Positions 13,000 to 61,782 of a stretch of 64,000 nt of DNA are shown piece by piece. The position numbers were made by a program, and so were the translations under genes. Source of the stretch: Entomortierella parvispora E1425 (lineage: Eukaryota; Fungi; Mortierellomycota). The stretch lies in NCBI GenBank assembly GCA_020891255.1, contig BQFW01000012.1, forward strand, positions 992,001-1,056,000. Direction: 5' to 3'. How positions within the stretch are numbered: position 1 is the first letter of the stretch; every line of letters begins with the position of its first letter. The notes under the pieces were generated by a model that saw only the letters and a list, made by a program, of their open reading frames with translations, searched no databases and was not told where the DNA came from.

Positions 13000-13285
13000 T
13001 CCATCAGCCATTTCTCTCTGTCCGTGGCTACAAACACTTCAGGTGTGTTTTTGAGGTGACCTGGGATCTCTCCTTCTAGGCGCATATCTGGCACACTACT
13101 CTCCATGCTGCTAGTGGATGCGGCAGGGGACCGGTCCGCGGAGATACTATCGGAGCTGCGCAGGGTCATGTTGGGATCCAATGAAGACTGGTTTCAAATT
13201 GATATCGGAAAGAAGAAGAGTTTCTCTTTAATCTCAGACGGGAGGGCTTGTAACTGCCCAGGTTCTCCACCAAATTGGCTTCGGG

Positions 13286-22433: not shown

Positions 22434-23959
22434 ACGACGCCTCTACTTTTGTCTTTCCCTGCTCCGTGTGCGTCTCTTCTATTGCTATCACCTCTTCGCA
22501 CTCTTCTTCAGACTGCTCTTCTTCTGCTGTCGCTACAACAACTCCCCTCTCGTCTTCAGCGCTCTCTTTCGCTACTTCAGAGTGTGTTTCCTCCAAGAGG
22601 CTTTTGTCCTTGAGGCTGGTGACTTCCTTCGTGATTGCCACAGTATTATTGTTAATTACATCGTCACTTCCCGCTTCAGCTTCGTCAACATATTCTTCGC
22701 ACTCACCTTCATGTCTGTGGTACGGTGCACCTCTGTACGACCCTCTGTTCGTGTTATAGTTTCCACCTCGGTAACCTGAGCGTCCTCCTCTGTAACCTCT
22801 GTAAGGTGCTTGGTACGAGTAGCCTGAAGCAGGTGCCCCCTGGTGGTTGCTGTGGGTGTTGCTTTCATTGCTGTTTGCGGATGAGCCATTCGTCACCGGC
22901 TTCTTGTTTTTCTTTGCATCTTCTCCTTCCTTGAGCACTCGTCGTCTGCGCGCTTCGTCAATTACTGTTTTCCATTCAGTGCAATCGTCAGGACCATAGG
23001 CATGAGGAATACTATCCATCAAAAAATCCAGCGTTCCAGTCTCAGGCATCGCCATTCCTATGTGTGCGAGCATACGCTTCTGCACTTCTGCTATCTGCAT
23101 GACGGTGAGTGTCAAGGAGGGGATTGACATGTGCAACGTTTGCGTGACGTCGGCGTGTTTCGGCAATTCTTTAACCCTGTATACTTCGACTAGACGTTTC
23201 AATCGATACTGGAGCTCCTTGTAACTCTCTCCCTTCTCCCTTCCAGCCTTGGCAAACTCATCCACTTCTAACGCTTTCTCCAGTAGAGTGAGCGCGGCGT
23301 CAACAAACTCCTGTTCGCATCGCTCCCAGTCCCATTCGCTTCCACGATCCGCTTCTCGTGTCACTACGAACGCGTCTGCAGCTTTTCGATCCAGATTCGC
23401 CAACGACAATAATCGGAAGCAGATTTTCTGGAATGCCAGATGTCCATACTTCAATTGACAGATGGTGCGGAATGTCAGTCGTCAACTTAATCTCCGATTC
23501 ATCAGACGACTTGGCGGCACCTGTGGCAACCAAAGCACCTGTAGTCGACTTGATCATCGTCGATCTCGTCGTTGACAGTCTCTCAGCTTCCCTGCTTTTG
23601 TTCAGATCCTCAACAATGGCGGACCATTCGACGATGCTCTCTTTAATGCCCTGGATCTCTTCCTTCACTTTTTCCAATGCGGCTTTATGGGCCGGTGTCT
23701 TACTGCTTGGACCCATGCTCTTGCGACCAAGTGTTATGCGTTGGTCTGTCTTGCTTTTCAACAGCTGTCCCTGTTCTTTCAAGCAATTCTGTGCCGACTC
23801 CAAGGTCAAAGGCTCATCGAAGGTCTCATCATCTACCTCCATGTGGGAGTCTTCTTCAGGTACGTCCTCAACCACTTCGGTTGGTACGACCACTTCACCA
23901 CTGCTCGTTCCAAGGTTGCCCTCTTCCTCCACTTGAGGAGTCTTCGAAGTCTTTGCCAT
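22434..23959 (-). pseudogene. gag: Gag of element D (frameshift near 23460)
   Basis: First ORF after the 5' LTR (ATG 23959), with a coiled-coil/helical region and an RGG/Y-rich stretch; continues into the inverted segment. Assigned by position. Confidence 0.75.
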
Positions 23960-24106
23960 TTCCTTGCGCTAGGGCAGGTAATATTTGTCAATGATATTGT
24001 CGTTGAGACAATCACAATGACCGATGCACGATCGATTATTGTTCACAAGGATGTATCCCAATGCCGATGGATGTAACCTTTTTGCGGATTGGATCCGATC
24101 TTGTAT

Positions 24107-24118
24107 TCGATAAAAAAA
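24107..24118 (-). promoter_or_regulatory. Atypical primer-binding position of D: TTTTTTTATCGA
   Basis: Abuts the 5' LTR end and lacks TGG. Complementary to LTR sequence TCGAT(A) (24152-24157) plus oligo(A). Confidence 0.6.
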
Positions 24119-24290
24119 TGGGATATTTTGGGCTCTCACTTACAATATGACTATCGAGACAAGAAGAAGGATCTTTATGTTCTGCCCTCGCACTCCTTTG
24201 ATAGGGGAGTGCGAGGGTGGCTTGCTACTAAACTAGGTTACTAAAATAAACATCCCTATTAATACACTTCAAGGCCCACGATATGCCACA
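24119..24290 (-). repeat. 5' LTR of element D (172 bp)
   Basis: TGTGGCATAT...ATATCCCA. A near-identical solo copy with TSD at 61611-61782 defines the ends. Confidence 0.94.
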
Positions 24291-53460: not shown

Positions 53461-53477
53461 GCCCAGGTTCTCCACCA
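53461..53477 (-). promoter_or_regulatory. PBS of family B, tRNA-Ala type, displaced 13 nt from the LTR
   Basis: TGGTGGAGAACCTGGG implies a tRNA 3' end ...CCCAGGUUCUCCACCA with U70 (Ala G3:U70 identity). Same sequence in B1 at about 13256-13272. Confidence 0.72.
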
Positions 53478-53490
53478 AATTGGCTTCGGG

Positions 53491-54526
53491 TGTGATGTTG
53501 TCTAAAGTAAGTATAGTCTAACGTCAGCAAAGGCTGGAGATGAAAATGATAACGAAAAGAATAATAACGAACAAAGCTCGCTGCTTACATATGATAGGGA
53601 CTTTGCTCTCTGTGCCACAAGGATCAAGCACAGCACTGCTATATGATCAGATACAATCTCGAGAGAATGAACTGGATAGACAGGAGGAGGAGAATGAGCA
53701 ACAGGATCACGATATAAGCAGGAACGAAACTGAAAGGAGACTAATAAGGACATACCAATGAGCTAAGCACGTCCTAATGGTAACCAAACAGGAGAATAAA
53801 CAACTACGGAGGCGAACACTAGGTACTATACTAACTAATAACAACAACAAGGGAGGATTGAAGGGATCTAATCAGTAAGAGCAAGGCTAGAAGTATTCTA
53901 TCCAGGGAAAGGGGACAAGGCCGCCTAACTGAGGGTTCAGGAGGGACTCGAGGGAAGGCGACGAGAAGATAAGGGAGGTTCCCAAGCACCAGTTAAGGTC
54001 TCAGGGTGCCCAAGCGCCAGTTAAGGCCTCAGGGTGGGATGCCAAGATCGTACAAGTCCACTCAAAAGAGACAAGACATTGTTGGTACCTCGTAAGTGAG
54101 CAAGGACACGGAGAACTGGTTGGCCGAGGTTCTTGACGGGACTTGTCGAGGACGGGGAAGATCGTAACTTGTGAGTGTACAAGGTCGATCAACAGAACGT
54201 AATAGGTCTGTGATATCCAAAGGTAAGGGGAGGAGGTTTAGACTAGCTACTAATAGTCTCAGCAATCGGAATTAAGGCGTCGAGCTTGCTGCTGCTGCAA
54301 AGGGGATATCGGGCAGGAAGGGGGGGATGTGTGTTTGTGTTCTGAAGGGTTCAACAAAAGTGTACTGGCAGGAATCGTAAAGGAAAAAGGCAACCAGGAG
54401 CAAAATGGATTTTGCTCCCTTCTTTATAGAAAAAAAAACTGAAACTAAACAAAATAATAAATGCTACTGAAAATATATCTCTACTCCGATGGATGTGGAC
54501 CGGGACTCCACATCTACTACACCACA
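53491..54526 (-). repeat. 5' LTR of B2
   Basis: Full B LTR, 1036 bp. Confidence 0.95.
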
Positions 54527-61260: not shown

Positions 61261-61272
61261 CGTTGAAAAAAA
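61261..61272 (-). promoter_or_regulatory. Atypical primer-binding position of element I: TTTTTTTCAACG
   Basis: Abuts the LTR end and lacks TGG. Complementary to LTR sequence CGTTG(A) (61323-61328) plus oligo(A). Confidence 0.58.
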
Positions 61273-61484
61273 TGTGATATTCTCGTGGGGTCTTACTTAC
61301 AAACAATAACAGTCAATAGAAGTCAACGAGAACAAGAGAGGGTTTTATTAAAGACAGGCACCAGCAGGTCTTTTATAGTCCGGCTGGTGCCAGTCACGGA
61401 AGACTCTTAAACATCGGAGAAGTAAAAAAGGACTGCGACTCAGGACTGGCGTCCTGAACCCCATACCTAGTGCTAAACATCACA
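61273..61484 (-). repeat. Putative 5' LTR of element I (212 bp)
   Basis: TGTGAT...ATCACA inverted termini, TATAAAA and AATAAA signals; interrupts a MULE transposase frame at 61485. The partner LTR is not in the window. Confidence 0.78.
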
Positions 61485-61610: not shown

Positions 61611-61782
61611 TGGGATATTTTGGGCTCTCACTTACAATATGACTATCGAGACAAGAAGAAGGATCTTTATGTTCTGCCCTCGCACTCCTTTGATAAGGGA
61701 GTGCGAGGGTGGCTTGCTACTAAACTAGGTTACTAAAATAAACGTCCCTATTAATACACTTCAAGGCCCACGATATGCCACA
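61611..61782 (-). repeat. Solo LTR of family D (172 bp)
   Basis: TSD TCGCT at 61606-61610 and 61783-61787. Confidence 0.95.

Follow-up and report, generated by a model that had tools for sequence, protein, structure and literature searches.

An oligo(T) run at the primer position of fungal chromoviruses matches a putative R-poly(A) junction of the elements' own RNA

How LTR retroelements choose the primer for minus-strand DNA synthesis has two known answers, a host tRNA or the 5' self-primer of the Tf1 type. Self-priming is established for Tf1 and predicted for Tj1, other fission-yeast elements, and the plant Tcn1 clade (PMC4600332, PMC10085805, PMC6317226). In Tf1, an 11-nt primer-binding site (PBS) abuts the LTR, with ATAAC, its first five bases, directly following the LTR, and forms a perfect duplex with the first 11 nt of the mRNA (PMC11042837, PMC10085805), while the leader is described as a three-duplex "pretzel" and the RNase H of RT cuts an RNA duplex (PMC10085805). 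Two other reports describe chromoviruses without a recognized priming mechanism. Skipper chromoviruses of Dictyostelia have a polypyrimidine tract with a characteristic C directly after the left LTR in place of the PBS, with no TGG and no complementary region in the LTR, and their authors used the C to argue against simple poly(A) pairing (PMC5006619). SM-Tcn1 of Selaginella, in the Tcn1 clade, is described as lacking a tRNA site or self-primer and as having a conserved, thymine-rich sequence between the 5' LTR and gag, with an unclear priming mechanism (PMC2864245). The supplementary tables of PMC6317226 carry no PBS sequences for the Tcn1 clade.

We analyzed a 64,000-nucleotide stretch of Entomortierella parvispora E1425 (GenBank assembly GCA_020891255.1, contig BQFW01000012.1, positions 992,001 to 1,056,000; hereafter the window), in which an initial annotation had proposed that a Ty3/gypsy element, D, carries an oligo(T) PBS complementary to its own predicted poly(A) junction. 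The observation was confirmed at every coordinate. On the minus strand, the 172-bp 5' LTR of D (24290..24119, TGTGG...CCCA) is followed at once by a T7 run (24118..24112) and ATCGA (24111..24107). Within the LTR, CATAAA (24179..24174), a candidate poly(A) signal, precedes ...TCTCGATA, which ends in TCGATA (24157..24152), such that the terminal A at 24152 lies 22 nt after the last A of CATAAA. The LTR ends are fixed by an identical solo LTR (61611..61782, minus strand) flanked by the target site duplication (TSD) TCGCT, and the D gag reading frame (23300..23959, minus strand; ATG at 23959) verifies that the LTR at 24119..24290 is the 5' LTR. No TGG-type PBS lies in the next 60 nt.

The D copy in the window lacks a 3' LTR and is split between 2293 and 24290 into at least seven pieces, some inverted, by nested insertions of other elements in a dense retrotransposon cluster. 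Three full copies elsewhere in the genome (L021, L022, and L023) are about 6.2 kb long and about 99% identical, with both LTRs, 5-bp TSDs, and the polypurine tract GGGAGAGAGC next to the 3' LTR. The 5' LTR of D in the window is identical to the LTRs of these copies, apart from the deletion in L023 described below. TSDs of D copies included GGCAA, TCGCT, CTGTT, and CTTCT. In L022 and L023, Pfam searches detected Asp_protease_2, RVT_1, RT_RNaseH, Integrase_H2C2, rve, and a Chromo domain at the integrase C terminus, identifying D as a Ty3/gypsy chromovirus (Metaviridae). The nearest named proteins are from Entomortierella, Lichtheimia, Absidia, and Rhizopus. The full copies have T runs of 7, 8, and 8 (T8 in L022 and L023). 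Of 15 LTR ends examined, the 3' and solo ends stop exactly at ...CCCA followed by the TSD and never carry a T. One copy, L023, has an internal deletion of LTR positions 49-135 in its 5' LTR only (L023:224-308; G000:C8:2109123-2109207 in our numbering of the genome's contigs), which removes CATAAA, most of the complementary block, and the upstream hairpin described below, while its 3' LTR is intact.

The complementarity extends beyond the 12-mer (T7 plus ATCGA) of the initial annotation. A 22-nt LTR block, GATCCTTCTTCTTGTCTCGATA (24173..24152), at a unique position in the LTR, contains GATCC, CTTGT, and TCGATA separated by TTCTT and C, ends in a single A followed by G, and pairs in three helices with an anti-block at 24111..24092 that consists of ATCGA, ACAAG, and GGATC separated by AT and ATC. 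The terminal A of the block pairs with the last T of the run. Between the block and the LTR end lies a putative U5 of 33 nt (24151..24119), which is GT/T-rich and ends in ...ATATCCCA. Taken alone, the 6-nt match TCGATA inside a 130-nt LTR tail is weak (shuffle p = 0.04), and it is the extension to three helices and the recurrence with compensatory changes in related families that make it more than chance.

To determine if this layout is shared, we searched for relatives by protein similarity in the same genome and in public assemblies. All nine families whose 5' junction could be read, four in this genome, four in soil metagenomes, and one in Lichtheimia, have an LTR block ending in a single A, then 23-62 nt of U5 ending in CA, then T6-8, and then an anti-block. 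For D (window and L021-L023), the junction helix is TCGATA with T7-8. In the same genome, Y (68% identical to D) has CAATTA with T7, X (61%) has TCACTGA with T7-8, and I (44% over the RNase H-integrase-chromodomain part of pol) has CGTTGA with T7. Element I is also in the window (61261..61484, minus strand), with its 5' LTR at 61273-61484, T7 at 61266-61272, an anti-block beginning CAACG, and the LTR block CCCTCTCTTGTTCTCGTTGA. Among the soil metagenome families, M1 (L075; 63%) has TCACTTA, plus an 11-bp distal helix, GGTGTGTAGAC, with T7; M2 (L073/L074; 66%) has TCGTCGA with T7; M3 (L084; 59%) has CATTA with T8; and M4 (L085; 59%) has TTCGTTA with TTTTTCTT. Lc of Lichtheimia corymbifera (L080; 44%) has TCAAAGGA with T6. 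Of 64 run positions, 63 are T. All families but X were first reached by protein homology alone, and X, first reached through a sequence pattern, was also recovered by homology. In M4, the leader downstream of the anti-block carries an A23 run flanked by partly inverted CACACTCACTCG / CGAGTGAGTG sequences (L085:2330-2400), which could be an assembly join or a real structure. Two Logan contigs (L086 and L087) and several metagenome contigs (L076-L079 and L081/82) did not reach a readable 5' LTR junction or a transcript end and are not among the nine families. The count also omits the 5' junction of a further family, Z (42% identical to D), which has a 154-bp LTR with a D-like block, AGATCTCTTCTTCCGTCTCGTCA, after ATTAAAAC (L051:3246-3399); the D copy L022 is inserted into a Z LTR (G000:C11:379466-379609).

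The covariation that the initial annotation had named as a test was found. Each anti-block pairs with one unique site of its own LTR over 4-7 contiguous Watson-Crick pairs beyond the A:T but with the LTRs of other families over only 0-3. On a 23-column alignment anchored at the junction, 98.1% of cells are paired and five of six pairs change on both sides (21 cells); none of 500 shuffles reached this level, and sliding the register reduced pairing to 28-50%. Because the LTR register was chosen by complementarity, these pair counts lean towards the structure, and the cross-family matrix and a separate shuffle test of the nine families (combined p = 1.2e-8) are the fairer controls. We also examined run-length variation, since the T run varies between 7 and 8 among 99%-identical copies in D and in X. 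However, in D (7/8/8), one of nine other homopolymer runs also varies, and the copies are too few to count this as evidence.

We next examined the LTR geometry. In seven of nine families, a TATA-like motif lies about 22-36 nt before the start of the block by our count. In D, Y (L062), X (L059), I (L060), and M3 (L084), this motif sits in the loop (CCTATCAAA, TTATA, AATAT, CTATAAAAG, and TATAAATTTG) of a 7- to 12-bp inverted repeat about 30 nt before the block, which is conserved in position while its sequence differs. In D, this is a 12-bp inverted repeat (CCCTCGCACTCC / GGAGTGCGAGGG; 24185..24217, minus strand) with the loop CCTATCAAA. It is presumed to be the promoter region, although its function is inferred and it may be a promoter element or an RNA hairpin in U3. 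An A(A/C)TAAA hexamer ends 15-27 nt before the terminal A in D, X, I, M3, and Lc, including AATAAA in X, I, M3, and the independent Lichtheimia LTR, whereas Y, M1, M2, and M4 have no such hexamer within 10-30 nt of the block end. Four of the nine putative cleavage dinucleotides are GA. By the usual spacing rules, the block would be about equal to R (about 20-30 nt), with the poly(A) signal at or just before the transcription start, but this is an inference from sequence alone.

We then asked what could pair with the T run. The LTR base after the terminal A is G, C, or T in every family, so the run has no templated partner in cis. D RNA contains no complement of the 12-mer at up to two mismatches, and the block followed by A5 does not occur in the genome. 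A search for retroposed copies ending in block plus poly(A), which would have marked the poly(A) site, found none for D and one unrelated one-mismatch hit for X. Pairing of the run with A-rich parts of U5 or with the AATAAA before the block was rejected because the A-rich stretches are not conserved across families and the geometry puts AATAAA opposite the far side of the anti-block. A neutral spacer would not stay T at 63 of 64 positions across families whose pol proteins are only 44-68% identical. Half-tRNA and internal-tRNA primers exist in other LTR elements (PMC6317226), raising the possibility that a host tRNA, tRNA fragment, or other cellular RNA ending in TCGAT-A7 primes D. However, the junction helix differs in every family and always matches that family's own LTR, such that a host primer would have to differ for each family. 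The 12-mer occurs 35 times genome-wide against 37 for its reversed control, no tRNA gene was found in the window, and tRNAs do not end in A7. A host RNA primer is close to excluded. Rfam and bacterial-type promoter/terminator scans around the site returned nothing relevant.

These results partly support the interpretation in the initial annotation that the primer is the element's own poly(A) junction. Its claims that there is no tRNA PBS and that the seven A's are templated nowhere in the LTR were upheld, the run sits exactly where the 3' end of a primer must pair, and the A's of such a primer must be untemplated. The poly(A) site, in contrast, remains a prediction. In the model that we tentatively favor, transcription would start about 30 nt after the TATA-like motif, at the start of the block, and cleavage and polyadenylation in the 3' LTR would fall at the single A that ends the block, so that the RNA ends in ...CUUGUCUCGAUA-AAAA(n). 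This end, in cis or from the co-packaged RNA, would anneal to the U run and anti-block just after U5, giving 12-15 contiguous base pairs abutting U5, the length and position of a normal PBS, plus two further helices. The tail beyond the duplex would be removed, most plausibly by an RNA-duplex-cutting RNase H activity as in Tf1, and the last paired A would prime minus-strand DNA, placing the cDNA end exactly at ...CCCA. In duplex predictions, the tail adds about 5.5 kcal/mol, and without it only 5-8 bp adjoin the primer end. Our analysis demonstrates the anatomy, its conservation, and the covariation, whereas the transcription start, the poly(A) site, the trimming, and priming itself are inferred. 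The model explains the pure T run, the single terminal A, the exact LTR ends, and the AATAAA spacing, and priming, or at least pairing, by the element's own R-poly(A) junction is the explanation that accounts for most of the features, but the model requires a trimming step that has not been demonstrated, and the M4 run TTTTTCTT would mismatch a pure A tail. In the incomplete set of papers searched, none proposed poly(A)-junction priming of an LTR element.

Covariation cannot distinguish the 3' partner from the 5' partner because both copies of R have the same sequence. The initial annotation had considered that Tf1-type 5' priming could not supply the A's, but it missed that the complement is about 22 nt long and begins about 28-32 nt after a TATA-like motif; the block therefore looks like all of R, and the 5' copy of R could pair as well. 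In this alternative, the first about 22 nt of the mRNA would fold back onto the anti-block, RNase H would cut after the terminal A, minus-strand DNA would start by copying the T run, and integrase would remove the 6-8 extra T:A pairs before integration. D belongs to the chromoviruses, the group in which self-priming is established, and a cis hairpin is predicted in 7 of 9 leaders. Tf1-type integrase is reported to cope with cDNA ends carrying the full PBS as a 3' extension, which about half of Tf1 cDNA is reported to keep (PMC11042837). Long trimming also looks possible in this genome, since family B in the window (minus strand, 53461-53490, also 13256-13285) has a 1,037-bp LTR starting TGTGATG at 53491, with a boundary confirmed by different flanks at other copies, and a tRNA-like PBS, TGGTGGAGAACCTGGGC, 13 nt (CCCGAAGCCAATT) beyond the LTR end. 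The 14-mer of the putative tRNA 3' end has 24 exact genome matches, many of them in TE clusters. The spacer of family B, however, is not T-rich, and the Tf1-like model gives no role to a T6-8 run conserved in nine families. It also leaves only 5-8 bp at the primer end, followed by an internal loop, and the helix next to the priming point is at the 3' end of the block. If the poly(A) site is at the block end, cutting the primer from the same RNA would leave no R for the first strand transfer. We consider a Tf1-like 5' self-primer with a trimmed T spacer somewhat less likely than the poly(A) model, but it is not excluded and remains a serious rival.

Two further possibilities appear unlikely. 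First, the pairing may be real but serve another step, either bringing the RNA 5' and 3' ends together for strand transfer, as the Ty1 CYC sequences and the Ty3 bipartite PBS do, or hiding the promoter-proximal poly(A) site in the 5' R, with a different, unidentified primer. Helices 2 and 3 are imperfect and look like a selected RNA structure rather than a copied primer, and in the 479-bp LTR of Lichtheimia (L080:4241-4800) the AATAAA lies inside the segment that pairs with the leader (GAAUAAACA with UGUUUGUUC), so the 5' poly(A) signal could be hidden in a stem, as in the HIV-1 poly(A) hairpin. Something must still prime at the U5 border, however, and nothing else was seen there; the first helix abuts the T run and the T run abuts U5, exactly as a PBS does. 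Second, and less likely still, the T run may have a function unrelated to pairing with A's, such as a Pol III-type terminator for a short LTR transcript, a protein-binding oligo(U), or an integrase processing signal, with priming by some other route. T7-8 is a canonical Pol III stop, a TATA-like motif lies 60-90 nt upstream, and Skipper has a polypyrimidine tract at this place without an LTR complement. This view does not explain why the run is always immediately followed by the complement of an LTR site that ends in a single A, gives no primer, and no evidence for such a small RNA or protein was found.

If the tentative poly(A) model is correct, a clade of chromoviruses in Mortierellomycota and Mucorales starts reverse transcription from the trimmed poly(A) end of its own genomic RNA, with a PBS (U6-8 plus 4-7 nt) that reads the R-poly(A) junction and an R of only about 20-30 nt. 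This would be a third way of priming LTR elements, would tie polyadenylation-site choice to replication, and may explain the T-rich or pyrimidine "PBS" of SM-Tcn1 and Skipper. The conserved, covarying signal at the priming position fits neither known answer as it stands. As a practical consequence, LTR annotation tools that look for tRNA matches or for self-primers of at least 10 nt starting 0-5 nt after the LTR, the criterion used for plants (PMC6317226), will report no PBS for this whole group. The families are young, with copies about 99% identical and some with long open frames, and a heterologous transposition assay exists for the related Tj1, making the question directly testable.

Compared with the Tf1/Tf2/Tj1 and Tf1/sushi group, element D and its relatives are likewise chromoviruses with no tRNA PBS, a sequence after the 5' LTR complementary to a site inside the LTR near the predicted mRNA start, and a predicted multi-helix leader; RNAfold, without a search for pseudoknotted folds, predicts one long interrupted hairpin with three helices, rather than a three-duplex pretzel, in 7 of 9 leaders. 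They differ from Tf1 in that T6-8 with no templated partner abuts the LTR and the templated complement starts 6-8 nt after the LTR, is only 5-8 nt long before the first internal loop, and lies at the 3' end of the block. As in Skipper, a pyrimidine run sits directly after the left LTR, but here the run is pure T, except in one metagenomic copy, and is followed by a covarying LTR complement. SM-Tcn1 shares the description of a thymine-rich sequence after the 5' LTR without a tRNA site. In retroviruses with AAUAAA in U3 and a very short R, such as RSV and MMTV, the poly(A) signal likewise lies at or just before the transcription start and R is only about 15-25 nt, although those viruses use tRNA primers. 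Finally, in target-primed reverse transcription of LINE/SINE elements, oligo(T):poly(A) pairing also sets the start of cDNA synthesis, but there the T-rich strand is nicked target DNA that serves as the primer on a poly(A) template, whereas here the poly(A) end would be the primer and the U run the template, inside a particle.
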